Below, one piece after another: positions 8,601 through 59,600 of a DNA stretch of 64,000 bases. The notes beneath the pieces are model-generated. The model had not been told where the DNA came from and ran no database searches. It saw nothing but the letters and a program-made list of their open reading frames with translations. Both the position numbers and the translations under genes were made by a program. How positions within the stretch are numbered: the stretch's first letter is position 1; each line of letters opens with the position of its first letter. Source of the stretch: Podarcis muralis (lineage: Eukaryota); contig NC_135663.1 of NCBI RefSeq assembly GCF_964188315.1, positions 124,001 through 188,000 of the forward strand. Direction: 5' to 3'.

Positions 8601-11062
8601 CCCCCCCCCCCCCGCTCCCCTTGCCATGATGCAGGAGCACCTTAAGAGCTCTCCCTCTCCACTCCCCCCCCCCCCGGGCATGGGCAGTTGGACAAAGGGG
8701 GCAGAGGAGTGGGTGTCCTAGACCTAGAAGACCTTGGAGCCACACTGGGCAAGTCACAGGCCTATCAAGTGGCCTGGTTTTTTTGTCTGCTGATGCAACC
8801 CCAGTTGGTGGCAAGATGTGCATTGCGGGGTGGGAGGGAGTGCACTGCTTGCAAAAGTGCCATGGCAGGGCAGAGGCTGGTTGGCGCTCTGCTTGGGGAC
8901 AGCCACCCCCCCCCCACTCCACCCCCAGCAGCTCAGCACAGAGCCCCCCCCAAGGGAGCTGCCAGGCAGGCAAGCAGCTGACAGGCACACAAACAGCAAC
9001 ACCAGCTTCCCCTTCTTGGCTGTTCTGGCAGTTGCTGACAGCCAGGCTGCTGCAGGTTCCCCTTTGGCGCAGGACATCCTGCCAGGAAATGCAGACTGCT
9101 TTGCAGAAATGGTCCCTCTGAGAACCCCTCTCCCTCCCAACCGAAGAGAGCCTGCATGGTCCAGCCAGTGGCTGCTCCAGCCCAGAATCCTGATGCCCCA
9201 AAGGGCTCCAAGGGCAGCTCCCCTCCTGGGGCCCCGGAGGCAGACCAGAGCCCTTGGGCCCAGGACTAGGCTCATCCTCTTGGTTAGCCTTCCAAGCTGG
9301 TGGCCATCCCTGCCTCCTGAGGGAGGGAGTTCCACTGGTGAACTCTGCTCTGCATGAAGAAATTCCTTTTATCTGTCCAGAGTCTTCCAACGTTCAGCTT
9401 TCTGCCATGTCCACCAGCTCCATGGTTTTCAGAGAGGAAATCTTTCCTCCATCCACTCTCTCCATGCCAAGCATTGCTTTATAAACTCTGATGCTGTCTA
9501 AAACTGGCCTTTTCTGCAAACTAAAAAGCTGCAGATGCGGCAACCTTCTTCCACTGGGGAGTCACTTGCCCCTAGATCATTCCCAGTCCTGGGGGGCCCT
9601 GGGTGCTGCCTGGGAGCTGGAGGCAGGCTCTGCCCCCCCGACCAAGGCCCTGCTCCCCGTCTCTTGCAGGGCCCTGGAGGCCAAAGGCCTGTGCACCTCG
9701 CTGCTCTATGGGCTGCCTCTGGTCATCCGGCCCACAAGCTGCTGGCGGATGAACTGGGATGAACTGGAGGCCAACCAGCAACTCTTCCGGGCCCTCTGCC
9801 ACTGTCTGTGGGTGAGTTGGGGTGGAGGGTGCAGAGTCGCAAGGCACTGAGTTATGGGGGGGGGGGAGGTTCCACGCCTGCAGGGCTAAGCCATAGTGAC
9901 CCCCGCCATGTGACGGTGCCTGCCTTCAGGAGAGGGCACCCCCCTTCTCCCTGGTACAGGGTCTCTGGGAAAGAGGAAGGAGAACCACACATTCCCCCCC
10001 CCCCGGGAGGGGGTGCCTGAGACTCTAATTTCCTCTTTCAGAAGCGAAACTGGCTGCTGCTGGCCAAATATGAGACCCCACCAGTGGCCCCCGGTCCCGG
10101 CTGGGGTCCCCACTGTCCGAGCCCCCTCCAGGTCCTCCTGCCCTCCGAAGGGGCCGCCTCGCTGCTGCTCTGCTCCCTGGTGGGCCGGGAGCTCCTCCTG
10201 CCCTGCAGCTTCCCTCTTCTGCCAGCAGAGCCTCCCCAGGCCACTCTCAGCCAAATGGAGGCAAGTAGCGGGGGGGGGGGGGGGGAGAGCCAGGCAGCAC
10301 ACCCCACCAGCAACCCAGTACGCCGGCACTGGACCACCAGAGAGAAAACACGAGGAAGGGGGGTGGTCCCGGGAGAGGGTCCCAGGGCTGCACCCTCGTG
10401 GTCCCACCCTCAGGCTCTGCCTGCTTTCAACCCTCCTGCCCTGGGGGGTGCGGAGATACAGGGCTTGCACCTCATCCTTGCTGGGAGGGGGCTTTGGGGG
10501 GTGGGTGGCAGGAGGGACCAGCGGCTAGGAATGCTCCCTCTGATTCCATGATGAAACCACCTTCACCCACTGGCTCCTTCCCTGCAGAACGTCCTGGACG
10601 GCCTGGACCTGGAGCCGGCCTACAGTCCCCTGAGTGGGGGGGCCCCCCTGTACCAAGCCCTGAGGAGCAGCCTGGGGCGCCCACCCCCCTCCCGGCCCGA
10701 GCGCAAGGCAGATCGGCACCTGCCCCGTCAGGTAGGTATGGCAGGCACCCGCACCCCATGGACAGGGCTGCAAAGAGCCACCCAGTGGCTGTTGGGGGGT
10801 GGAGGTCCACCCCACTTGTGCCAGACCGCTTGAGATGCAAAGGGAACCGGTGCCCCCCGGGAGTGGAAAGGGGGACCAGCCCTCGCCTGGGGGTCACACT
10901 GCCTCTTCCACCTCCTCCTTCTGCCCACAGCAGGGCAGCCGCCCCCACCTGGGCAAGGCCAGGGCCATGGTGGCCCCCCTGCGCATGGCACCCGCTGCCC
11001 CCCGCCCACCCGCCTTCTCCCTGTTCTCCGGAGACGAAGAAGAGTTCCTGGACACCATGTGA
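5689..11062 (+). CDS. M1AP: Meiosis 1 associated protein, 3' six coding exons (5' exons upstream of the window)
   Basis: Exons 5689-5865, 6883-7039, 9670-9811, 10042-10260, 10588-10731, 10931-11062 are phase-consistent. Peptides DLQTVENDVVALETFFKGW, CVKCDAQERLL, YGLPLVIRPTSCWRMNWDELEANQQ, KRNWLLLAKYE, VLDGLDLEPAYSPL and ARAMVAPL match recalled human M1AP. Tail-to-tail with DOK1 as in human. Confidence 0.92.
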
Positions 11063-44770: not shown

Positions 44771-45143
44771 ACTCGACGGTGTGATGTTCAGAAAGCCTTC
44801 CCCTCAGAGCCCTAGAATTGCAGAGATGGAAGCACCCAAGGGTCATCTAGTCCAACCCCGGCAATGCAGGCATCCCTGCCAAAGCATCCCTCCTACGAGG
44901 GAGAGACGCCGCTGCTTCCGAGGCAGAACGGCTCTTCCTGTCGAAAGACAGAATTTCGTTTCTTAGCCTTTGGATCCAATGGTTCGGGACGGCTTCTCCC
45001 TTCCGGAGCAGCTGGAAATGAGCCCGTCCGATATTGGCATACGGAGCGGCGCCCCCTCCCCTGTCCCTTGCCGGCTGGGGTCCCCACCCCTCCCCGGAGC
45101 AGGCTGGCGTCGCCCTTTTAAGGCGCGAGGGTGCCCGGCGCTT

Positions 45144-45180
45144 CTGTTTACAGAAGGGAGCCGGCTGGGCGTCACGTGGC
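45144..45180 (+). promoter_or_regulatory. Promoter motifs of the BNIP3-family gene: FOXO-type CTGTTTAC (45144-45151) and GTCACGTGGC E-box/HRE/CLEAR-like (45171-45180), inside a CpG island
   Basis: Motifs read directly, 70-110 bp upstream of the ATG at 45251. Confidence 0.5.
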
Positions 45181-45250
45181 CTCCAGCTGGCCGGCTGGCT
45201 AATGGGACGGGCACCTGCCTGGCACCGGAGGGAGCCCAGGCAGCGGAGCG

Positions 45251-48134
45251 ATGGAGGCGCCCCGGGAAGACGCCCTGCAGAGTGAGTGGCCCTGGGCGGG
45301 AGGGGGGAGGGAGGGAGGAGAAGCGCGCTCCCGCGCCGGGTCCCTTGCGGGGCCAGACTGGGGTAGGGGCTCTGGGGCTCCCCCCCCCAGCAGCTGCAGC
45401 AGCATCCCCCAGGCGGTGGCGGGGGGCGGGATCCAGTTCGGCCCCTCTAACTGCCTCTTCCCGCCTGCCTGCCCGCTTCCTAGGCTCCTGGGTGGAGGTG
45501 CCCCCACTTGACCTGGAGGAGCCCCCCACGCCGGCCTGTGCGCCCCACCGCGACATGGAGCGGATCCTGCTGGAAGCGCAGCTGGAGATGGAGCCGCCGC
45601 GGGCCGAGGGGTAGGTGGTCGTGGGTAGATGACTCTTTCGTGGGCAGCGGGGTCGGCGGAACTCCTTGCAACTGGCTGTGAGCGCAGCAGGCGAAAGGGA
45701 GGCTCTGCGGTGGACAAGCGGGCGGCGGCTGCTAGCTCCGAAGGGCCGGGAAGCGACGACACCGGGGGGCGGCGGGAGAGCAAGCTTGGACTGCCGGGTC
45801 TCGGGTGAGGGGACGGCAGATCAGCCTCTCGGAGTCAGACAGGCGCTACTGGGCATCCCTGGCTCTTCGCTCCTTCCTTAACCCCTGCTCAGGGCTGCGT
45901 ACCCAGGGGGCGGCCCACTGCCTGGGGGAGGCCAGCTCTTCCTTCCAAGTCCTCCCGCGAGCCTGACTCGACTCCCCCCCCCCCCCCCGGCTATGGGGCT
46001 GCATGAGGGGCTCCTTAGGCTTTCACTGGAGTTGGCATAACTGCGCTCCTAAGCAAATTCCGGTCAGCTCCTTTGAATGCTAGGTAATTATTGCACGGAT
46101 GTTCCCTCAGGACTCGCGGTTCTCTTCCCTTCCCTTTTGGGATGCTCTGAAACGTCAAAGTTTGAACCAAATCGCCTCTCTTGAGATTTGTATTTCTGAA
46201 CTTCTCACTGAGAAATTGGAAAGTCTGGCTGATTTTCTTTGGGCTCCACCTTGCCACACGAACCTGAGGATGTGAACCCCACATCCTGCCATTATAAATG
46301 TACCAGAGCTGGAAGAATCATGGAATCACAGAATTGTAGAGTTAGAAGGGACCTCCAAGGCCCATCTAGTCCAACCCCCTGAAATGCAGGAATCTCAACA
46401 ACATGACTGATGCCATCCAACCTCTGCTTTACAATCTCCAAGGAAGGAGACTCCACCGCCTCCCTAGAGAGTCTGTTCCACTGTCAGCCAGCTCAGAAAG
46501 CTCTTCCTGGGGTTTAGTCACAAGGAGCCTTTGCTGTGTGGGCTCTGGTTTCTACAGCTGCTCCCCCAGAAAGACCGGCCTGGGAGTGGCCACCAGACGT
46601 CTTCCAGGGACTGCCACAGTCAGGACACACAAACCCCCTGCAAGGCTGACCTGGGCTTCTTCTGTGGGTGACAACTCGGCTCCCTTCTCCTGTCTGGGCT
46701 CCATTGGCCAGCCTCTTCACCTGCCCAGGAGGACAGGAGGCTCCTGCCTTCTGAAGGGCTCACCTGAGCATCCTGCAGGCTGTGGACAGGTCTGGCCTGG
46801 TAGAGATTTAGGTCCACTGAGGGCATCAGCCTCTCAAGGGCTTCACAGCAGCTTCTGAGCATGCTCACAAACAGCATGGCAGCAAAATCTCTCTTGTGCC
46901 TGAACACACAGACAGCGAGAGCAATTTCTCACCAGCAGATTCCATTTCTTGTGTTTCCAGCTCCTTCCGTGCACTGAAGGCGCCTGGTGTGGAGGACCTG
47001 AGCCCAGGGCAGGTGAGTGTCAACGCTGAGGTGTGCAAAGGAGCCACCTGGGCCATGGGCTTGTGGTCTTGTGGCCTCAGAATGAGAAGGCGCCAACCAA
47101 ACGGGGGTCTTGAAAGGTTTAATCTCAGGGGTCATTGTGGTGCCTGACCCATGAAGCACCTCAAGTTCCATAGACAAGGTGTGTTCACACCCACCCACAA
47201 GACATGCCCAGATGGTTGCCCAGGTGATATGCCCCCCTTCATCCTTAAAAAAAATTATGGGGTGCTGCACTTTCTCTTTGCAGAGGGAAGACGCTGAAGG
47301 GTCTGTCCAGCTGGGGACCCTGCCCTGGTCGTGGCCCAGCCCCCCTGAGCACCAAAAGTAAGGATGGCTCTTCACTGGCTTTCCCCGGGGGTCCTGGCTT
47401 CAGGCAGCCCCCCCAAAAACTCTCACCCCACTGCTTGCTCCACTTTGGACTCTGTCTGTCTGTCTCTCTGCAGGGAGCTGGCCTGCCTGCCCCCTGCGTG
47501 TGCCCCCCTGCTCAGCCCAGTTCTACACAGGAGGAGGGGGTTGCGGGACCCCCAGCTGCTGCTTCTGGTCATCCCCTCTCTGCTGCTCAGCCACGTCTTG
47601 GCCTTTGGCCTTGGGTGAGTCGGGGGGGGAGGGGGAGGCAACGAAGCAGGCACAGTTAGCGCCTCCAAACCTCTTGCCTGGACTCCTCTCTCACACACAG
47701 CAGTGGCCCACCAGCTGAGGAGAAATGGGATCGTGGCAAAACATGGGGATGGGGGTTGATTTTTCTCTCCCTTTACGGAAACACCCTTAATTCTGCCCAG
47801 TGCAGGCAGCCCCCTATAGTGTCTGTCTCCTCCCCCTCCCCTCCAAAACGTCTTGAGACCTGCGGTGAAGTCTCTGAGCACCTGGCTGGCTGCTGCAGAA
47901 GCGGATGCTGGATTAGATGGGACTCCTCTGGCCTGATCCAGCAGCCTCTTCTCATGTTCTTCTGCTGCTCAGAGCCTTCCTTGCCTCTCCCACTTGCCTG
48001 GAGGAGCGTAGCAAGAGAGGAGCTGAGGCCTGGCCTCTCCTGAGCAAGCCCCTCACTCACTGCCCTCTTCCTCTCCTCTCTCCAGCATTTGTATCGGGAA
48101 GCGTCTGGCTGCCTCCCCATCAAGCAGCCTGTGA
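45251..48134 (+). CDS. BNIP3/BNIP3L(NIX)-family paralog, 6 exons, 157 aa
   Basis: Exons 45251-45281, 45484-45610, 46961-47012, 47284-47357, 47474-47614, 48086-48134 total 474 nt, all GT-AG, phases 1,2,0,2,2. Protein MEAPREDALQSSWVEV...DMERILLEAQLE...LPWSWPSPPEHQKE...VIPSLLLSHVLAFGLGICIGKRLAASPSSSL versus BNIP3 SWVEL / DMEKILLDAQHE / WDWSSRPE / [29 protein letters not shown] at 48615-48620. Confidence 0.9.
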
Positions 48135-49158
48135 GAAGACGCGAGGGGCCTCCTGGGACACCCCACCCCCCACCCCAGCTCCCCTTTCTCCACGCTCCAC
48201 ACCAAACTGTTGCACGGCCCCGTCTTGCCCAAGACCACCTGAGAAGCGGTGCAGAGCCCGGCATCAAACCTGATACCCTCACCCACCCACTTCCGTGTAC
48301 ACAACCTTCCTTGCCTCTGCTGTGGGGCCCAGCCTTCATAAAGACTTAGCCCCAAAGCCCCCTCTCCACTTTCCCTGCTGCAGTGGGGCAGAGGGGATTG
48401 GGTTGCTGGACTCCAGTGGCGGCGGCAGCAGCTCCCTTCCTCCCCCTCCTCTCCCAGCTAGCAGCTGGGAGTTAGAGCCTGGACACATCTGGAAGGCCAC
48501 ACCTGGAGGTTGTGCTACCCCCCCCCCACCATGCCAATCCAAGGAGCTTCGGAAAGACAATCTGCAGCAAAGCATGGCAGCTGATCTACTGGAACATGCC
48601 GTTGCTTCATTCAAAATAAATCCTGTTTTTCAAAATCCTAAAAAAGTCTACCAGGCATTTATTTTTAATGTATGGGGGAGAGTAGTTGTGCTTTGGGTGT
48701 GGAGTGAGGGGCACCATGTCCTGGCAATGCCATGGGGTAAGAAGCCCCCTCAAATATGTTATTGGTGGAGCCAAAGGGACCTCAGACCCTAGGAGTTGGC
48801 TCCTGTGTGGCTGCCTTGGATTGAGGCCTCCTCCGTCACTGGGGGGAGCACCCCATGTCACTGGGGGGAGCTGCTGCTCTCAGCCTGGCTGGGGGCACCT
48901 CTCTTTTCTCCAGTCCCTGGCTGGACCCCACACTGCTCTTATTTTTGTCTATTTGGTTTTCAAAAGTTTACATACTTTAACATCTAATTTATCCAGTGTT
49001 TGTTTTCTGGGGGGCGCAGCGGTACGATTTGAACTATAAAATTGTGATTTTCTTGAGTCAAAATGAGAGTACCCCTCAACATTTTTTTTAATAGAAAAAA
49101 GCACTGAATTTATTCACTGACTTCCCCTTCCCCTTCCATGATGTTCTATATTTATCCT

Positions 49159-51275: not shown

Positions 51276-51514
51276 GAGACCTCCTCGGATACAGTGTGTG
51301 TGTCTTCCCTTCTCTCCCCCATCCTTTCATTGGGGGGGGGGGGTGCTCTGCAAGTTAAACTGGACAGATCTGAACAATAAAAAGGCTGGTGCAATCCCTC
51401 CATGCTGCGGCTCTGTGGCAGGTTGACTGGTGTGGACTGATGGGGGGAGGCAGCCCCCTCACCCCATGGCTCCTTGGGGAGGGAGACCCCCGGACCCTTC
51501 TGGGCACGGCACCA

Positions 51515-54500
51515 TCACAGGAACCAAAAACACTTTCGCCGGGACTTCTTGGCCTCCGCTTTCACCACGGGCAGATTCAGCGTTGGCGACGGCTCCTGGT
51601 GGCTTGGCGTGGCAGCTCGCGTGGCCACCGGGGGGCTGTGGCTCAGCTCAGGCTCAATGGTGCTCAGCACCTGCTGCAAACGCCCCTCCTGCTTCCGGAA
51701 ATCATGTTCCACGCTGCGGGGAGGCGGGGAGCAAGTCAGAGGGAGGCGTCTCCCAAGGAACCCCACTCAGCCAACGCTCGTGATTGGGGACAGAGATGGG
51801 GGTCTGGCTGGGCTGCCCCCATCCCTCCTGGGGGGCCGTGGGAGCTGGTGCAGAGGAGGCAGGTCAGCTGGCAGGAGCCTGGGGAGGCCGCCAATGGGAG
51901 CCCGTCTGCCTCCGCCGACCCTGGCATGTCTCACCCGTCGCCGCAGCGGCAGAGACAGACCCGTCAATCCCAATTAGCACTGATGCCTTGTGCGAAACAC
52001 ACAGGCAGGAGGCCAGAAGGAGCCGGCGGGCGGGCAGGCAGGCAGGCAGGCAGGCAGGGTGGCGGGGAGAGGAAGAGGGCCCAGTCCTGCCAGGGAGGCT
52101 CTGCACAGCCAGCCAGCCAGACCCCCCACCCCCAAAACAGCCTCCGAGGGTCAATGGAAACGTAGGGGAGGAACCCAGAGAAAAGGCTCCAAGGAGCAGA
52201 GGCTGCCGGTCTCTCCTTCCTTGGAGGTTTTTAAACGGAGGTCGGGAGGCCGTCTGCCAGGGATGCTTGCGGGGGGCTGGTCTAGAAGACCCTCAGGGGT
52301 CCCTTCCAACTCTACAAGTCCAGGATTCTTTGGTCTGTGGAAGATGTCTTCCTTGTGCCAAACAGCCCTCTAGGACTCTGATTCTATGGAACCCAGAGCG
52401 CAGCCCACCTCTGCCCCCGGCAAGGAACTGGCAGAGACACCCGCCTCTCCCTGGGCATGGAGGCCCTTTCACCATCCTGGCTCACAGCCCTCCTCTAACC
52501 CCTCCTTAACAAATTGTCCAGTAGCACCTTAGAGACCAACTCCGTTTGTTCTGGACAGAAACTTCCGTGTGCATGCACACTTCTTCAGGTAATAGAAAAC
52601 TTAGACCCAGAACAAACGGAGTTGGTCTCTAAGGTGCTACTGGACAATTTTTAAATTTATTTTGACTGCGTCAGACCAACATGGTTACCTACCCTCCTTA
52701 ACACCCACTGAAGCAAGGGGCACCATAGATAGATTGGTGCCCAGGGCTGGGGGGGGGGGGCTCCTGGCATCCCTCCCCAGCTTCAAGGCAGTGGGAGTCA
52801 TTGGCTGACTCAGCGTCCCAGGACTAAAGCGAGGGAGGAGCAGGGCCAGAGACGCAGCCTCTGTTCTCGTGCCATGCTGGGGGGGGGGGGCTGCCACTGC
52901 AGGGACTCTGTCCTCCTGAGAAACTCCGGCAGGAGCAGACAGGCTGTGGCGGCCTGTCATTCTTCGCAGGCACCCTTCATATCACGTCTGCCAGAAACGC
53001 TTGCCTCCGCTTCCCTCAAGAACGTGATTGGGGCAGGCAGGCAGGCGGGCGGGCATGGGAGCCCTTGCCAGCTCCCTTGGGACTTCTCCAGCACCCAAGA
53101 CCTCTGGCAGCCCCCAGGGCACCCTGAACCCAGCCCACCAGCATCCGGCTGGCCACTGCGAGAGCACGATGATGGACTAGGTGGTCCACTGGCCTGATCC
53201 AGCAGCCACACTCTTCTTGTGCCACCCAACTCTATGAATGTATGAAATGTCAGTGTCAAGAATCATAGAATTGGAGAGTTGGAGGGGACCTCAGGGGTCA
53301 TCTCGTTCAACCCCCTGCAATGCAGGAATCTCAGCTAAAGCATGCAAGACAGGTGGCCCTCCAAGCAAGGGCCCAGGTGTCTCTAAGCCGGACTGGGGGG
53401 CAGCCTCACCCCCTGCCCCTGTATCTGGTATTCAGAGGCAGAACACAGCCAATGGGGCTGGTAGCCATTTGCGGCTGTCAGCTCCATGGGTCGGGGCCCT
53501 GTGGGGCTGCCCCAGCCTTGCAGTCGTTTCTGGGGTATGGTCCAAGCTCCCCACAGGCCCTGCAGAGTCTGCTTCTGCCCCATTGCGCCCCCATCAAAAT
53601 CCACTGCCCCTGCAGTGCCAGGGAGCCCCAGGATCAGGCCCAGGGCTCACTTAGTCCAGCCTCCTGTTCTCACAGTGACCAGCCAGATGCCTTGGGAAAC
53701 CCACAAGCAGGATCCGGGCGCAAGAGCAGCCCTTCCTCCTCCTGCAACTGGCCCTCTGAAGCCTGGCCACCTCCAGGGAAGGGGCTCTGCTGGAGAAGTG
53801 GGTGGTCTGGGGGGGGGAGAAGGTGAGAGGAAAATCTGCTGGGCAGGGAGGAGAGCGGTCTGCCTGAGACCCAGCAGGACCCCCAGACTGGAAAGCAGCC
53901 AAAAGACGAAGGAGCTGGGTGGGCTTAGCCTGAAAGTGGGTTGATGGAGGTGGGGAGATGCTGGCCCTTTAGGGAGGGGGGGTCCTCTTCACCCCAGGCC
54001 AACGATGCAGCCTTCCTCTCTCTCCAGAGTCCCCTTTGCCCAGGGTCATCACATCAATAATACTGAACAGGCGTACATTTTATGTTGATGTGAAATGTGG
54101 AGGTCAGGAGCCGATGTCTGGGCTGCCGGTGGATCTGTGGCCGGCAGCCGAGAGCAGCCGAGGTGGGGGAAGCCAGGGGGCACCCCCAAACCCCACCCCA
54201 CCCCCGCTCCCAGGCCCCTCCTACCTGTAGATGATGCAGGCACAGTCCCGGCACGTCCCGCAGTTGGTGGTGTCCTGCCCTGTCCGGTAGGACTGCCGCC
54301 TGAAACGGAGCAGAAGGAGCCCATGAGCAGAAGGCCCAGGCGCCCCCTCCCTGCCTGGTCGCAGGGGCCCCCTTTGGTGCCAGGGGGGCACAAGCAGCAA
54401 TGCCCAAAGGGCATCTGGTCAAGCAGCAGGGACCAGGGGGAGGGGAAGCATCAGGGCTGGCTTGGGGGGCCAGGAGACCCCGGGAGGTCTCAGGGAGGGA

Positions 54501-56657
54501 AGCGCAAGGCAGGCAGCCAGGCCAGGACTCAGGCCTCACAGCGCAGAGGCCGCCCCAAGGCAAGGGGGCTGGCCCCACAGTGGCACTGCTTCGGCTTCCA
54601 AAGTGAGCAGGCACAGTGCCAGGCGATGCCAAGGCTGGCTTGTGGCCCGCAGAACCTGCTGCTGCCACCATAAAAATGCTCCATCATTTAAAGCGCAGTC
54701 AAACCAAAAGGTCGTGTTTTGCTGGACAGCTGAAGCTCCCAGCATTTCCCTGTGCGTTTGCTGGAGAGAACTCTGAGAGAGACAGTCCCACGGTGCCCAG
54801 GCGGGCAGAGGGCACAGCCATAGAGCTCTTCTCCTTGCCTGCCTGGGCACATGCTCTCGTTTTTGTCTCTTCATCCCCAAGCCAGAAATGGGAGAACAGC
54901 TGCGAAGTCTGAGCTCTAATGTTCAGACACCATTTTAAGCTAAACTGAAGTCTGCCTCTCAAATTGGCTCATTTGGCTGGAGCCTGGTGCTGAAAACAAA
55001 GGTCACAGGTTCGATCCCCGTATGGGATAGCTGCATATTCCTCCATTGCAGGGGGTTGGACTAGATGACCCTCAGGGTCCCTAGAGGCTCGACAAATTTT
55101 GTCTCTGTAACTGAATTACCATTTTAAGCCTGCCTGAATAAAGCTGCTGTTATTCTGCCTCAGAAACTCTGAGTAGATGTTATTTTTATCTCTTACAAGA
55201 CTGTTTGTGTGATTATTGTTTTAAAAGGGGGAAATATCAGGAGAATCCAGTCTGCCTTAAAACATCCTAGATTATTAAACGGAAAGGCTAAAACTCGCCC
55301 ATCTAAGCAGCCAAAGGGATCTCACTCTGCAGAACTCACAAGTGTGAGGAAGAAGAATATCTAATAAATATAGCCTCTCCTGGCATCTATGCAACATCCC
55401 TGGCTCCAAAGAGTCAAGGCGGCTCTAGCCTGGCCAGTGGGGGCTCCTTGGGCAACCCAGACCCCCCCCAGACCCGCCTCACCCATCTCGCTGCGCCTCC
55501 TTCTTCTCCAGATCCTGAATGACATCGAGTAGCACCTTGATGGTTCGTTGGCTGGTCTCCAGCACCCCCTCGAGGGACTGCAGCTGGGAGTGGATGTCAC
55601 CCACCCACCCGGGGAGGTCCTGAGATGCTGGCGGGGGCGCCCTCTGCGCGGCAGCCACAGACACCAGCTGCAGAAGGTGGTCCTGCCCGCGGGGAAACGT
55701 CTCCCCAGGTCCAGCGGAGAGGCAGGTCTCAGGGGGGCAGCTGCGACCGGAGGAGGGCAGAAGGGGGTCCGGAGGCTTCTGGGAAGGCGTGGGGGCTGGG
55801 GGGTGGGCCTGAGTGGTGCTGAGGCTCCCTGGGGAGGCTGCAGGCGCTGCTGGTTTTCCTGACTTAGGGGGCCCTGCTGTGGGAAGCAGGAAGGCAGAGG
55901 TGGGGTCTTCGGTGGGGAGGCCCTGAGCAAGGGGGCAGGGGGCAGGGATGCCCCTCTGGGGGGCACAGGGAGGGGCTCTCGAGGCCTGCTCAGAGGGGGG
56001 TGGGCACAGCCAGGGGGCGCCAGAGCTGCTGCAGCTGCTTGGTGTGCCATGGGGCTGCGTGGAGGAGGGGGCACAGTGCTTGCGCTGGGAAGAGCAGCTG
56101 GCCGAGAGACACGGGGCCCCCCGCCCCGGGTACGGGGGGCATATCCCCCGGGGAGCTGGCAGCCCGGGGCACAGGGTGGCAGGAAGTCTGGGGCACTGCT
56201 GGGCGTGGGGTAAGGCGAGGGAGCAACCAAGGGCAGGAAGGCTGGCGGTGCCCCCCAGGGGCGGATCCTGGCTGCGGCCCACTGCACAGGGCGCCCCCTC
56301 CTGGGCGAGGTCGCAGGAGCTCTTGCTGCGGGTGGGCCGCTGCAGGCTGGGTGACGTCTGGCTGGCGGTGCTGATGCCAGTCGCCCCGTGGGGATCCGGC
56401 AGGGCGAGCAGCAGGCGGGGCCCGGATTGGGGCCAGCTCCGCCTGGCGCAGTTTGCGGCAGAGGCACGTGGGAGGTGGCTGCCCAGGGGCTCCTCTTCGC
56501 CCTCCTCTAGGTCCTTGAAGCGCACCTGCTGGGCGCGGTGGCGGCGGCGCTGCAGGCGGTCCTCAGCACCCGGCGAGTCGCGCTTGAGCAGCACGGAGCG
56601 GACCCCGGTGACAGCCTTCTCTTGCCCGGCCTCCGGGGCTGCCTCCTGGCTGGCCAT
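51515..56657 (-). CDS. INSYN2/FAM196-family paralog (INSYN2B-like), 3 coding exons, 482 aa
   Basis: Exons 56657-55483, 54299-54225, 51713-51515 (phase 2-2, GT-AG); ATG in GCTGCCATGG; 5' UTR acceptor at 57077. Motifs [87 protein letters not shown] match recalled INSYN2A/B. Confidence 0.9.
52511..52691. mobile_element. Second Penelope-like remnant: 44-bp perfect inverted repeat with 11-bp TSD, opposite orientation to the 49.2 kb copy
   Basis: Arms 52511-52554 and 52607-52650; CCCTCCTTAAC at 52500-52510 and 52692-52702; hammerhead core degenerate (GAAA changed to GGAA). Confidence 0.8.
54960..55081 (+). mobile_element. tRNA-derived SINE with CR1-type tail (POM/Squam1-like)
   Basis: A-box-like TGGCTGGAG, B-box GGTTCGATCCC (55008-55018), then the same cattgcagggggttggactagatgaccctcagggtccc tail found throughout the window. 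Confidence 0.75.
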
Positions 56658-59600
56658 GGCAGCCCCTTTGCCCCGCCAGGGGGGCGTCACAGCCTCCTGC
56701 CCCGCATGACCGCAAGCCGTTCCCCAGAAAGCGTCGATTCGGCTGCCCCCTCGGTCGGGGCGCAAAGCATCTCTCCCGTGGGTCCTGCTGCCTGGGGCTC
56801 AGCCTCAGCGACTCCCAAGGGGGCAGCCGGTGCCTCATGGCTGGAGGAGGCCTGGCCTTTGCCCCCCAGCCGGCAGGAACCCCATGGCCTGCTCTCCCCC
56901 CTCCCCCCTCTCTAGGGTCCGTCCCTGGCCTCTGAGGGCCTCTCTCTGGGCCGGGAGAAGGGAGGGGGGAGAAGGGAGCCCATCCTGCTCACGGCTGCTG
57001 CTTCCGCTTCCCGAGGGTCGGTCACTTGTGGGGCCAGCAGGCACAGCGCCAGCCCATAGCCTCCCTGGGCAACGGACCTGCAGAGAGAAGAGAGGAGATG
57101 AATGGGTGGAAACCCGTTCCAGTTATAGTCCACACTACAACCAGGGCTAAGAAAAAGTAATACAGGAGTAATGAAAATAAGAGAAGTGTTGAGCTGCAAG
57201 AGACCCTCAAAGGACGTCCAGTCCAACCCCCTGCGATGCAATGCAGGAATCCCTGACTTGTCCTATAAACTGGCCTTAACGCAGAGCAGATGGGGAGTCA
57301 TAAGAAGCAGCCTTGCTAGCCCAGGCTCACATCAAGTGGCCCAGGAGCCGAGGAGAGAGGAGAGTCTGCAGCTGGGTGAGGCTACCAGAGTGGGGCCTCC
57401 TAGTCCAGCACCCTGTTCCCCTCTGGCCAACCAGATGCCCTCAAAGGGAAGCCCTGAGAGCAGCAGCCCTCTTCCACTCTTGTTCTCCACCTTTCTAAGA
57501 TAGACTGATGCTATCCATGGAGGCTCCACTTAGGAATCACAAGAACCTAAAGGGAGCTCTGTAGGAAGAAGCCCTTTAGGAAGAACCTAAAGGGAGCTCT
57601 GTAGCAGCTGGATCAGGCCACTAAAGGGGCTGACCATTAAAGAGCAGCTGTGGGGGTGGGGGGTTGCATCAGAGTAGGGCTGAGGGGGGAGGGCTTAACC
57701 CTTTCCTTTCCATTCACTTTTCTTCTGAAATAACTCCCCAAGCCTGTCACCCACCCATCCCACCCAAGGTCTGGTGAAACAGACATTTGTGGAGGACGAG
57801 AGGGCGATCGATTGAGGGCCACTAGCCAGGATGCCGTGCTCTGCCTCCACAGTCGGAATCCAGTGGCAGGAGGGGAGCGCTGCCATGTGCTCAGCTCCTG
57901 CCTGGGGGGTTCCCACAGGTCGGCCCCTGTGAGGACAGGATGCTGGACTCGATGGGCCCCCGGCCTGACCCAGCAGGCTCTTCTGGTGTTCTTAAAGCCC
58001 CTCCCAAACGTGCCCAGTTTCCTTCCGGAGGCTCCCACAACCCCCTCTGCCACGTGGCCACCCCCTAAAAACACCCCTCTCCTGTCCCTCTGCCACCTCC
58101 AGTCTCAGGCAGGATCACAAAACACAAAGCGACAAGCTCTGGTCTTTGGTGCTGCTGCTGCTGCCTCTGTTTGGAGAGAGAGGGGGGGGAGAGAGGGAGA
58201 GGGAAAGGGGGGGGGAGAGAAGGGGCCCTTCAGCGTAAACAGGCCAGGAACGCCAGCCAGGCAGAAGCCACAGCTAAGAATAGCAGCCTGGCCTTCATGG
58301 GGAGCAGGAAGAGGAGAGGAGGATGAGAAGCCGTCCCACACACCCACCGCCTGTGTCGGCCTCCAAGAGGAGCATCAGGGAGGGGACACCCCCAAAGAGC
58401 CTTTGCTGTGCCCCCTCAAACCGACCAGGGGATCCATCTCCCAGCCCAGAGGCAGGAGGCGGCCACAGCCTCTCTTTGCCACAGAGAGCATTCCCCGGCT
58501 GGCGTCCCTTTCCCCCCGCCACTCAGTTTCCCAGCTGACCTCCAAGTGGCTGTGCCGGGGGGGGGGGAGGCACCTTTGGGAACTGGGGGGAGAAAGCAAA
58601 AGGTAGCAAGCCTGTGAACATTTTACATGGTTGCCATTATTATCAATGGCTCAATGGTCCCAGGATATAGAATGACAGAAAGGTCATCCAGACCAGCCCC
58701 CCCCCCTTGCAGGAATCACAACTGATGCCATGATTCTGACAAATGTCCATCTGACCTCTGCTTAAAAACTGACAACAAAGGAAAGGAAGGTTACAGCCAC
58801 TTAAAAATGCAGTATTGAAAAGAGTTTAAGATGAATTACTGTGGGATCTAGGTATCTACCTTCAACAGAGAGCCAGTGGTTAGTGCTGGACTGGGACCTG
58901 GGAGAGACTAGGGTTTGAATCCCTCCTCAGCCAGGAAACTCCTTGGGGGATCTTAGGGGTCCGTCAATGCTCCTCTCAGCCTGACCTCCCTCACAGGGTT
59001 GTTGTGGGGATTAAATGAGGAAGGGAGAGCCATGCACCTGCCCTCCTGAGCTCCTTGTAGAAAAAGGTGGGGTGGAGATTCAATACAGAAATTAAACCCC
59101 AGGTGTCATCGAGGGCAGAGTAAATGGTGTGTCTTCAGCATGCAATGGAACCTGTCCCACAGGACTGTCAGGTGCCATGAAAACAGGATGGCGGACTCGA
59201 TGGCCGCTGGCCTGATCCAGCAGAGCTCTAAGAAGGCCTAAAGAAGGTGCCAGGAGCCCCCTCTGTAAGGTGGGAATTCCCAGAGAGCCAAAGGAGAGCC
59301 CTTTAGCCGGGGGGGGGGGGGAGCCCCCAAAGCCGTGCCCTGTGCACAACACTCTCCCTTCCTGCAGCCGACTTGGCAGAGAGGAGGGAGAAGGAAGGGC
59401 AGGAGGGGTGTCCCAGGCAGGCCAATGCCTCCTGGCAAGAGGGCCAGGCCAGAAGAGCCCCCTTCTGCCCAGCTGCAGTGCCTCCCCCCCCCCACTGTGC
59501 CATCACTTCTCCCCAGCAGGAAGGGAGTTGCCAGCTCAGCACAGCCGCCCAGACTTTCTCCCGCACTGCTAACAAGCAAAGTTTCCAACTGCTGAGCGAG

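Follow-up and report, generated by a model that had tools for sequence, protein, structure and literature searches.

The stretch of Podarcis muralis DNA considered here (NCBI RefSeq assembly GCF_964188315.1, contig NC_135663.1, positions 124,001 to 188,000; 64,000 nucleotides in all, hereafter the window) carries, on its plus strand after AUP1, a small gene at positions 45251 to 48134 that encodes a protein of the BNIP3 mitophagy-receptor family. Combining direct splicing of the window with RNA data, profile searches, structure prediction, phylogeny, synteny and substitution counts, we find that the gene is open, transcribed and already annotated, and that it is likely to belong to BNIP3L2, a third vertebrate lineage of the family beside BNIP3 and BNIP3L (NIX).

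A first-pass annotation, made from the letters alone, had described six GT-AG exons that splice into a stop-free protein of 157 amino acids (aa), with a Kozak start, a CpG island and an AATAAA signal, and this description is accurate to the base. Spliced together, exons 1 to 6 give 474 nucleotides (nt), that is, 157 aa plus the stop codon, with zero internal stops; all five introns run from GT to AG with a polypyrimidine tract before each acceptor, and the start codon stands in the context GGAGCGATGG. Coding exon 1 (45251–45281) encodes residues 1–11 and is followed by a phase 1 intron. The second exon (45484–45610) contains the LC3-interacting region (LIR; S12-W13-V-E-V16) and the helix of the minimal essential region (MER; residues 32–44), the third (46961–47012) a linker predicted to be disordered, and the fourth (47284–47357) the string WSWPSPPEH, in which the family's W-x-W-SSRPEN block survives in degraded form. 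Exon 5 (47474–47614) supplies a juxtamembrane basic stretch and most of the transmembrane (TM) helix, and exon 6 (48086–48134; 49 nt) the end of the TM (G146), K147-R148, a nine-residue tail and the stop codon. The spliced product is residue for residue XP_028600487.1, 'BNIP3-like isoform X1' of P. muralis in RefSeq (LOC114604515), and the gene is therefore already annotated, with a model that is exactly Gnomon isoform X1; the same name is used in Podarcis raffonei, Lacerta agilis and Zootoca. RefSeq also holds an isoform X2 of 110 aa in which the 141-nt exon 5 is skipped in frame, leaving a protein without the TM segment. It was the 'uncharacterized protein' isoforms X2 of P. raffonei and L. 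agilis that a word search with exon 2 matched first, and a word search with the TM-less isoform X2 as query returned almost no matches. Such in-frame, TM-less isoforms that skip exon 5 are listed in RefSeq both for the lacertid gene and for the bona fide BNIP3 of Falco (isoform X2).

The RNA evidence consists of contigs assembled from eight P. muralis RNA runs, together with the stranded raw reads of run X23. Runs X1, X3 and X4 have contigs with all five junctions at exactly the predicted positions, and runs X5 and X9 have contigs with some of them, these five runs representing five samples from three studies. The junction between exons 1 and 2 (45281>45484) was seen in X1, X3 and X4, that between exons 2 and 3 (45610>46961) in X1, X3, X4 and X5, and that between exons 3 and 4 (47012>47284) in X1, X3, X4, X5 and X9. 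Contig 1 of run X4 (1185 nt) runs from the 5′ untranslated region (5′UTR) through all six exons and the 3′UTR to 48630; it reaches at least 123 nt upstream of 45151, which places the transcript start at or before about 45028. Contig 17 of run X3 begins in exon 2 and ends at 48619. In X23, the stranded reads that span the junction between exons 4 and 5 have their first mate on the minus strand, and therefore derive from plus-strand RNA. The CpG-island promoter, the 5′UTR and the first two exons occupy 44951–45750 on the plus strand, with a GC content of 0.70 and a CpG observed-to-expected ratio of 0.66 compared with 0.16–0.17 in the gene body, and the 3′UTR occupies 48135–48630 on the same strand, with AATAAA at 48615 and contig ends at 48619 (X3) and 48630 (X4). 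Transcription of the gene thus begins in a CpG-island promoter, and the transcript is both spliced, joining six coding exons, and polyadenylated. RNA depth is low, and intron-containing contigs, which could be pre-mRNA or DNA carry-over, are also present. A junction from exon 4 to exon 6, as required by isoform X2, occurs in none of the eight RNA runs.

As judged from its sequence, the gene is a member of the BNIP3 family. The full protein matches the Pfam profile PF06553 (BNIP3) with 44.9 bits (E 1.3e-11; gathering cut-off 26) over two stretches, the N-terminal and the TM part. Searched exon by exon, matches in Pfam and the PDB are weak: exons 2 and 5 align colinearly to profile positions 28–53 and 143–169, exon 5 also matches the BNIP3 TM dimer 2j5d (E 0.014), and exon 4 alone has no Pfam match. 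The gene architecture is shared as the first-pass annotation stated, and down to the intron phases: exact spliced mapping of proteins to loci gave six coding exons and phases 1,2,0,2,2 in 8/8 genes (the window gene, alligator, condor, Syngnathus, Megalops, Callorhinchus, Falco BNIP3 and Albula NIX), and the last coding exon is 49 nt long in seven of these (the window gene, alligator, condor, the two teleosts, the elephant shark and Albula NIX).

The motifs point the same way. The LIR reads S11-S12-W13-V-E-V16, a W-x-x-[LIV] core with a preceding Ser (SWVEV, residues 12–16); DMERILLEAQ spans residues 34–43 and the MER motif MERILLEAQLE residues 35–45, a motif whose role in the family has been described (PMC5526904; PMC11555697). 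The TM stretch covers residues 123–146, with the best 19-residue Kyte-Doolittle window at 123–141 (mean 2.36), and its dimerisation pattern is intact (S134-H135 and A138xxxG142xxxG146), followed by K147-R148 and the nine-residue tail. In a family alignment of 16 proteins, S12 and W13 of the LIR, L39, A42, Q43 and E45 of the MER, and I145, G146 and L149 are invariant, and P129, S130, L131, H135, G140, G142, I143 and R148 nearly so. The LIR, the DMERILLEAQ block and the TM anchor listed by the first-pass annotation therefore stand; its WxW-x-S-x-PE block is present only as a remnant, WSWPSPPEH-QKEL being all that is left where other family members have the BH3-like helix followed by the W-x-W-SSRPEN-[IL]PPKEF segment, with no helix predicted and a predicted local distance difference test score (pLDDT) below 50. 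The same region is degraded alike in the aligned bird and alligator proteins. AlphaFold2 (mean pLDDT 60.7) predicts a MER helix at residues 32–44 and a TM helix at residues 121–150 (pLDDT about 87–94), with disorder elsewhere. For BNIP3 and NIX, only the MER, the BH3 and the TM are predicted to fold (PMC11555697), and because the MER and TM helices are predicted in the lizard protein and the BH3 helix is not, it would lack only the BH3 helix among the predicted folds.

Homologs of the gene are widespread. A search by words and an exhaustive one with phmmer gave squamate orthologs in Phrynocephalus, Pogona, two Anolis, Sceloporus and Hemicordylus, as well as proteins from alligator and many birds and a large teleost group labelled 'Zgc:73226' in UniRef; no mammalian member was among the matches of these searches, which are the only ones in which mammals were covered. 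Two maximum-likelihood trees (LG+C20; 49 and 51 proteins) were inferred. The sauropsid proteins (eight squamates, alligator and birds) form a clade with support 100/99 whose members are fast-evolving, on long branches. NIX forms a clade with support 96/93 in the first tree and 96/88 in the second, and BNIP3, together with zebrafish bnip4 and the percomorph 'BCL2 interacting protein 4', a clade with 100/98 in one tree and 53/98 in the other. BNIP3 and NIX, with hagfish, group to the exclusion of the sauropsid clade (95/84 and 94/82), and one branch of the second tree, with support 89/90, has on one side just the sauropsids together with the teleost 'zgc:73226' proteins (clade Z). Approximately unbiased (AU) tests reject joining the sauropsid clade to BNIP3 (p=0.011) or to NIX (p=0.010). 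The first-pass annotation had placed the gene outside both BNIP3 and BNIP3L, and trees and AU tests agree with it on this point; its interpretation as a whole is partly supported.

Three vertebrate lineages of the family, BNIP3, NIX and BNIP3L2, were distinguished by Wu et al. 2017 (Front Physiol 8:539, PMC5526904), who reported BNIP3L2 from ray-finned fishes and coelacanth alone; their sampling took in alligator, turtle, chicken and zebra finch, and no BNIP3L2 was reported from these four. The supplement of that paper lists zebrafish NP_991133.2 (187 aa), gar XP_015215528.1 and coelacanth XP_006005304.2 as BNIP3L2. The N-terminus of the teleost Z-clade proteins reads like that of medaka BNIP3L2 in the same supplement, and the lengths agree (181–187 aa); because of this agreement we equate clade Z with BNIP3L2, and NP_991133.2, by UniRef naming and inference, with zgc:73226. 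Taking all evidence together, we consider it likely that the lizard gene is a member of this third lineage and, going by its motifs, a mitophagy receptor. The best explanation for the third lineage itself would be a split from the stem of BNIP3 and NIX early in vertebrate history, and proteins of elephant shark, skate, lamprey and axolotl are probable further members. The Petromyzon protein ends in KRLAAS...L, as third-lineage proteins do, and hagfish proteins end in ...TTPSGNSY and group with BNIP3 and NIX; these tail types hint that the third lineage may have split off before cyclostomes and gnathostomes diverged.

Two zebrafish genes were considered as relatives and set aside. The first-pass annotation had raised possible orthology to bnip4, but bnip4 groups with BNIP3, and joining it to the lizard clade is rejected (AU p=0.0012). 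It is the former bnip3b (PMC4201762), and the BNIP3-type synteny that a trout study found on two zebrafish chromosomes (PMC6142374) fits an origin of bnip4 as a BNIP3 duplicate. Zebrafish 'bnip3', needed for Hif-induced mitophagy (bioRxiv 10.1101/2020.03.26.010405), was dropped as a third-lineage candidate because the supplement of PMC5526904 lists a separate Dre_BNIP3, with Dre_BNIP3L2 being NP_991133.2.

The position after AUP1, claimed from the start, is common to lacertids, alligator and condor, and the gene is thus not peculiar to one reptile, as the first-pass annotation had supposed. In P. raffonei, to whose locus the window is colinear, and in L. agilis, the order is an HTRA2-like gene (minus), an AUP1-like gene with a CUE domain (plus), the BNIP3L2-type gene (plus) and a gene of the FAM196/INSYN2 family (minus); Zootoca shows the AUP1-like gene, the BNIP3L2-type gene and FAM196. 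The FAM196 gene (about 488 aa, minus strand) lies downstream in three lacertids, and at about 51500–56700 of the window (L001:15974-20887). Alligator and California condor have an AUP1-like gene (plus), the BNIP3L2-type gene (plus) and a large DOCK gene (minus), and in the elephant shark a gene named 'BNIP3' lies tail-to-tail with a DOCK gene; where complete, the DOCK gene of these three species encodes 1826–1834 aa (L002:12407-21434, L008:13458-21969 and L004:29536-33730 in alligator, condor and elephant shark). A tblastn search of the window with the 3′ exons of alligator and condor DOCK gave no match. The archosaur DOCK neighbour may be DOCK2 or, alternatively, a further DOCK paralog that mammals no longer have. 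Among fishes, the pipefish BNIP3L2-type gene lies beside a FAM196-family gene (L007:1-323) and a thrombospondin gene, and Iso_dh is the only neighbour seen within 10 kb in Megalops; AUP1 was not seen in these two loci. Next to Falco BNIP3 and to Albula NIX there is a B55-like WD40 gene, in keeping with PPP2R2D and PPP2R2A as the expected neighbours. The pairing of FAM196 with a BNIP3L2-type gene may mark a paralogon. LOXL3, DOK1 and TLX2 of human 2p13 have paralogs near BNIP3L (LOXL2 and DOK2 at 8p21) and toward BNIP3 (LOXL4 and TLX1 at 10q24-26), and this arrangement makes an old ohnolog origin of the window gene, with which our data are consistent, plausible.

Several observations weigh against assigning the lizard gene to BNIP3L2 as a functional mitophagy receptor. 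The trees are unrooted and free of invertebrate outgroups, so that monophyly of the third lineage depends on where the root is placed, and the whole third lineage appears as one side of a branch with weak support only (82/57). The positions of the axolotl and shark proteins disagree with the species tree, identity is only about 70% to agamid orthologs and about 35–40% to fish proteins, and within squamates a separate BNIP3 is documented for snakes only. The adjacency to DOCK or FAM196 is no proof of orthology, because it could be ancestral to all paralogons. The central W-x-W-SSRPEN block is degraded in the lizard protein. Pairwise dN/dS (nonsynonymous over synonymous substitution rate) among lacertids is noisy, ranging from 0.10 to 1.56 on 2–13 nonsynonymous and 3–9 synonymous changes, and across the four lacertids 16 nonsynonymous and 11 synonymous variable codons correspond to an omega of about 0.5 (p=0.07 against neutrality). 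In the literature searched, we found no localisation, LC3-binding or mitophagy data on any member of the lineage.

What else could the gene be? The sauropsid AUP1-linked gene might be a separate old paralog, a fourth ohnolog of the two rounds of vertebrate whole-genome duplication (2R); the genes of fishes, shark and axolotl would then belong to another. The relation between the sauropsid and fish clades is left unsettled in the first tree, the axolotl, shark and lamprey proteins are not grouped with the sauropsids in the manner expected from the species tree, and AUP1 adjacency is documented in sauropsids only, with Iso_dh in Megalops and FAM196 plus thrombospondin in pipefish instead. However, sauropsids and teleost Z together form one branch side at 89/90 and have the ILLEAQLE and KRLAAS...L signatures in common, FAM196 or DOCK adjacency links lizard, pipefish, alligator, condor and shark, and no sampled species has two copies that are neither BNIP3 nor NIX. 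We therefore regard a fourth ohnolog as rather unlikely.

A gene that is transcribed and open, and yet decaying or repurposed under relaxed constraint, its product having ceased to be a mitophagy receptor and being, for example, just a small tail-anchored membrane protein or one acting through a TM-less isoform, would account for the dN/dS of about 0.5 with its wide scatter, for the long branches, and for the loss of the BH3 helix and the degraded WSSRPEN block in all sauropsids; the low RNA depth, an overlapping upstream ATG and the TM-skipping RefSeq isoform X2 could be read in the same sense. For the substitution counts, coding sequences were rebuilt in four lacertids, each translation being contained in the annotated protein, and compared pairwise by Nei-Gojobori. 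As the pairwise dN/dS values rest on too few substitutions, intron divergence between P. muralis and each other species was taken as a neutral yardstick, with Fisher tests. Intron divergence and dN were 0.054 and 0.006 for P. raffonei (p 7e-6), 0.079 and 0.038 for L. agilis (p 0.005), and 0.098 and 0.035 for Zootoca (p 4e-5), so that nonsynonymous change lies 2–10 times below intron change. The lacertid changes fall mostly in linker regions, with just two nonsynonymous changes in the 42 codons of TM and tail. Squamates, alligator and birds all keep the open frame, every splice site, the intron phases and the motifs of LIR, MER and TM, with the LIR Trp, the MER and the Ser-His and glycine-zipper residues of the TM invariant or nearly so, and the exon-5-skipping junction is absent from the RNA runs. 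Because motifs and frame are retained and dN stays below intron divergence, the data argue for purifying selection on the LIR, MER and TM modules, with fast drift elsewhere and an overall constraint that appears moderate. Decay or repurposing is accordingly, in our view, unlikely.

A BNIP3 or BNIP3L ortholog that diverged quickly after relocation beside AUP1, as the names 'BNIP3-like' (NCBI) and 'BNI3L' (B10K birds) and the capacity of long branches to mislead trees might suggest, is highly improbable, given that AU tests reject both placements, that Falco has, in addition to its sauropsid-clade copy, a bona fide BNIP3 with a B55-like WD40 gene next to it, that snakes have a normal BNIP3, and that the AUP1-linked position is common to lizards, alligator and condor.

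As a BNIP3L2-type protein, how might the lizard gene product act? By analogy with BNIP3 and NIX, for which tail anchoring, dimerisation, LIR, MER/WIPI contacts and receptor-mediated mitophagy have been described (PMC11555697), its C-terminal tail anchor would insert into the outer mitochondrial membrane and its C-terminal helix would dimerise through the Ser-His pair and the AxxxGxxxG glycine zipper. In the disordered cytosolic part, the LIR (SSWVEV) would recruit LC3/GABARAP and the MER helix (MERILLEAQLE) WIPI proteins, as in NIX with WIPI2, and the outcome would most likely be a receptor that marks mitochondria for autophagy. Mitophagy-receptor function is what we infer for the protein, and the 'extra mitophagy receptor' of the first-pass annotation thus stands as far as its LIR, MER and TM motifs go, less so for the central block, which is degraded, and for constraint, which is only moderate. 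PPTC7 bridges FBXL4 to BNIP3 and NIX via a loop just after the BH3 domain (PMC11555697); the corresponding segment is degraded in the sauropsid proteins, and control of their turnover would consequently probably differ from that of BNIP3 and NIX.

Possibly, sauropsids possess a third receptor that kept the LIR, the MER and the dimerising anchor while shedding the BH3 and the PPTC7/FBXL4 loop, that would escape ubiquitin-dependent turnover, and that would be controlled mainly by transcription, perhaps through GCGTCACGTG, and by an upstream ATG; we regard this scenario as doubtful. GCGTCACGTG is an E-box decamer that has ACGTG as its core and is similar to the CLEAR (coordinated lysosomal expression and regulation) motif; it lies at −78 to −80 in 4/4 lacertids, and in the condor just upstream of the homologous Met (about 10015–10028 of the condor locus), where the RefSeq model translates it as an N-terminal extension (…GRHVTG…). 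In the window it is part of GCGTCACGTGGC (CACGTG, with the ACGTG core) at 45169–45182, about 78 nt upstream of the ATG. We conjecture that GCGTCACGTG is a candidate regulatory site, for which HIF, TFEB/MITF or USF might be the binding factor. The upstream ATG, at 45202–45204 on the plus strand and in weak context, is out of frame in P. muralis, and the 35-codon upstream reading frame that it opens there runs across the main start. In Zootoca and L. agilis, by contrast, it is in frame, which explains the longer RefSeq models of these species (174 and 255 aa).

Intron 2 contains an interspersed repeat at 46300–46460, with an RNA word depth in the thousands and many loose ends into unrelated sequence. 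In the same intron, contigs of runs X1, X2 and X5 carry 13 other letters in place of 45896–46501 (606 bp), an insertion-deletion variant between individuals.

The gene therefore represents a known lineage with a wider distribution than published, and not a new receptor class or mechanism. The first-pass annotation had called it an extra, apparently uncharacterised gene, a description that overstates the novelty of a locus whose exact 157-aa product is annotated in RefSeq and whose lineage has been published as BNIP3L2 (PMC5526904); we found no functional study of zgc:73226/BNIP3L2 in the literature, nor any paper dealing with a third paralog of birds or of reptiles. With members found in teleosts, squamates, crocodilians and birds, what appears to be new is that the BNIP3L2 lineage survives, and is expressed, in sauropsids, in a fast-evolving form without the BH3/PPTC7-binding region; it probably survives in axolotl as well. 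The finding is incremental and at family level. Mitophagy-receptor biology, however, rests on mammalian BNIP3 and NIX; the sauropsid members correct the published distribution of BNIP3L2, and a natural variant without the BH3/PPTC7-binding region could serve, for example in chicken cells, to separate the parts of a receptor needed for mitophagy from those that control its turnover. They also correct misleading database names ('uncharacterized LOC', 'BNI3L', 'BNIP3', 'IF-2-like'), and set bnip4 apart as not being the ortholog. Names within the third lineage are inconsistent: the Sceloporus undulatus ortholog LOC121930524 is called 'translation initiation factor IF-2-like' or 'uncharacterized', and B10K bird copies are called BNI3L ('BNI3L protein, partial'), with some products given as 'uncharacterized LOC'. 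At NCBI, 'BNIP3' denotes BNIP3L2-type proteins of teleosts, while percomorph genes of the BNIP3 clade are called 'BCL2 interacting protein 4'.

Among the known family members, the bird and crocodilian proteins (for example those of Gymnogyps, Tyto and Alligator) form one clade with the lizard gene (100/99). The alligator and condor copies are likewise AUP1-adjacent, with six exons and the same phases; they differ in their downstream neighbour, DOCK instead of the FAM196 of lacertids, and the bird proteins are longer, about 190–215 aa against 157 aa.

Fish BNIP3L2 (zebrafish NP_991133.2) is, like the lizard gene, outside the BNIP3 and NIX clades and constitutes the nearest clade (89/90). It has the six-exon structure and intron phases, an ILLEAQLE-type MER and the KRLAAS...L tail, and in pipefish also a FAM196-family neighbour. 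In contrast to the lizard protein, it retains the full W-x-W-SSRPEN-LPPKEF block in about 180 aa; the lizard protein, with its degraded block, is shorter and evolves much faster. Zebrafish bnip4 (NP_997858.2) resembles the lizard gene in being an 'extra' family member outside mammals, but lies within the BNIP3 clade.

With BNIP3 (human 10q26) and BNIP3L/NIX (human 8p21) the lizard gene shares the PF06553 profile, a Ser-preceded LIR, the MER helix, a tail-anchor TM that bears Ser-His and AxxxGxxxG, and the division into six coding exons with the same intron phases. Identity to these proteins is about 35%, and the lizard protein lacks the BH3-like helix, has a degraded PPTC7-binding segment and ends in ...SSSL, whereas BNIP3 and NIX end in ...STF or ...STY. 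The neighbourhoods differ too, with HTRA2-AUP1 and FAM196 around the lizard gene and PPP2R2D or PPP2R2A beside BNIP3 and NIX.

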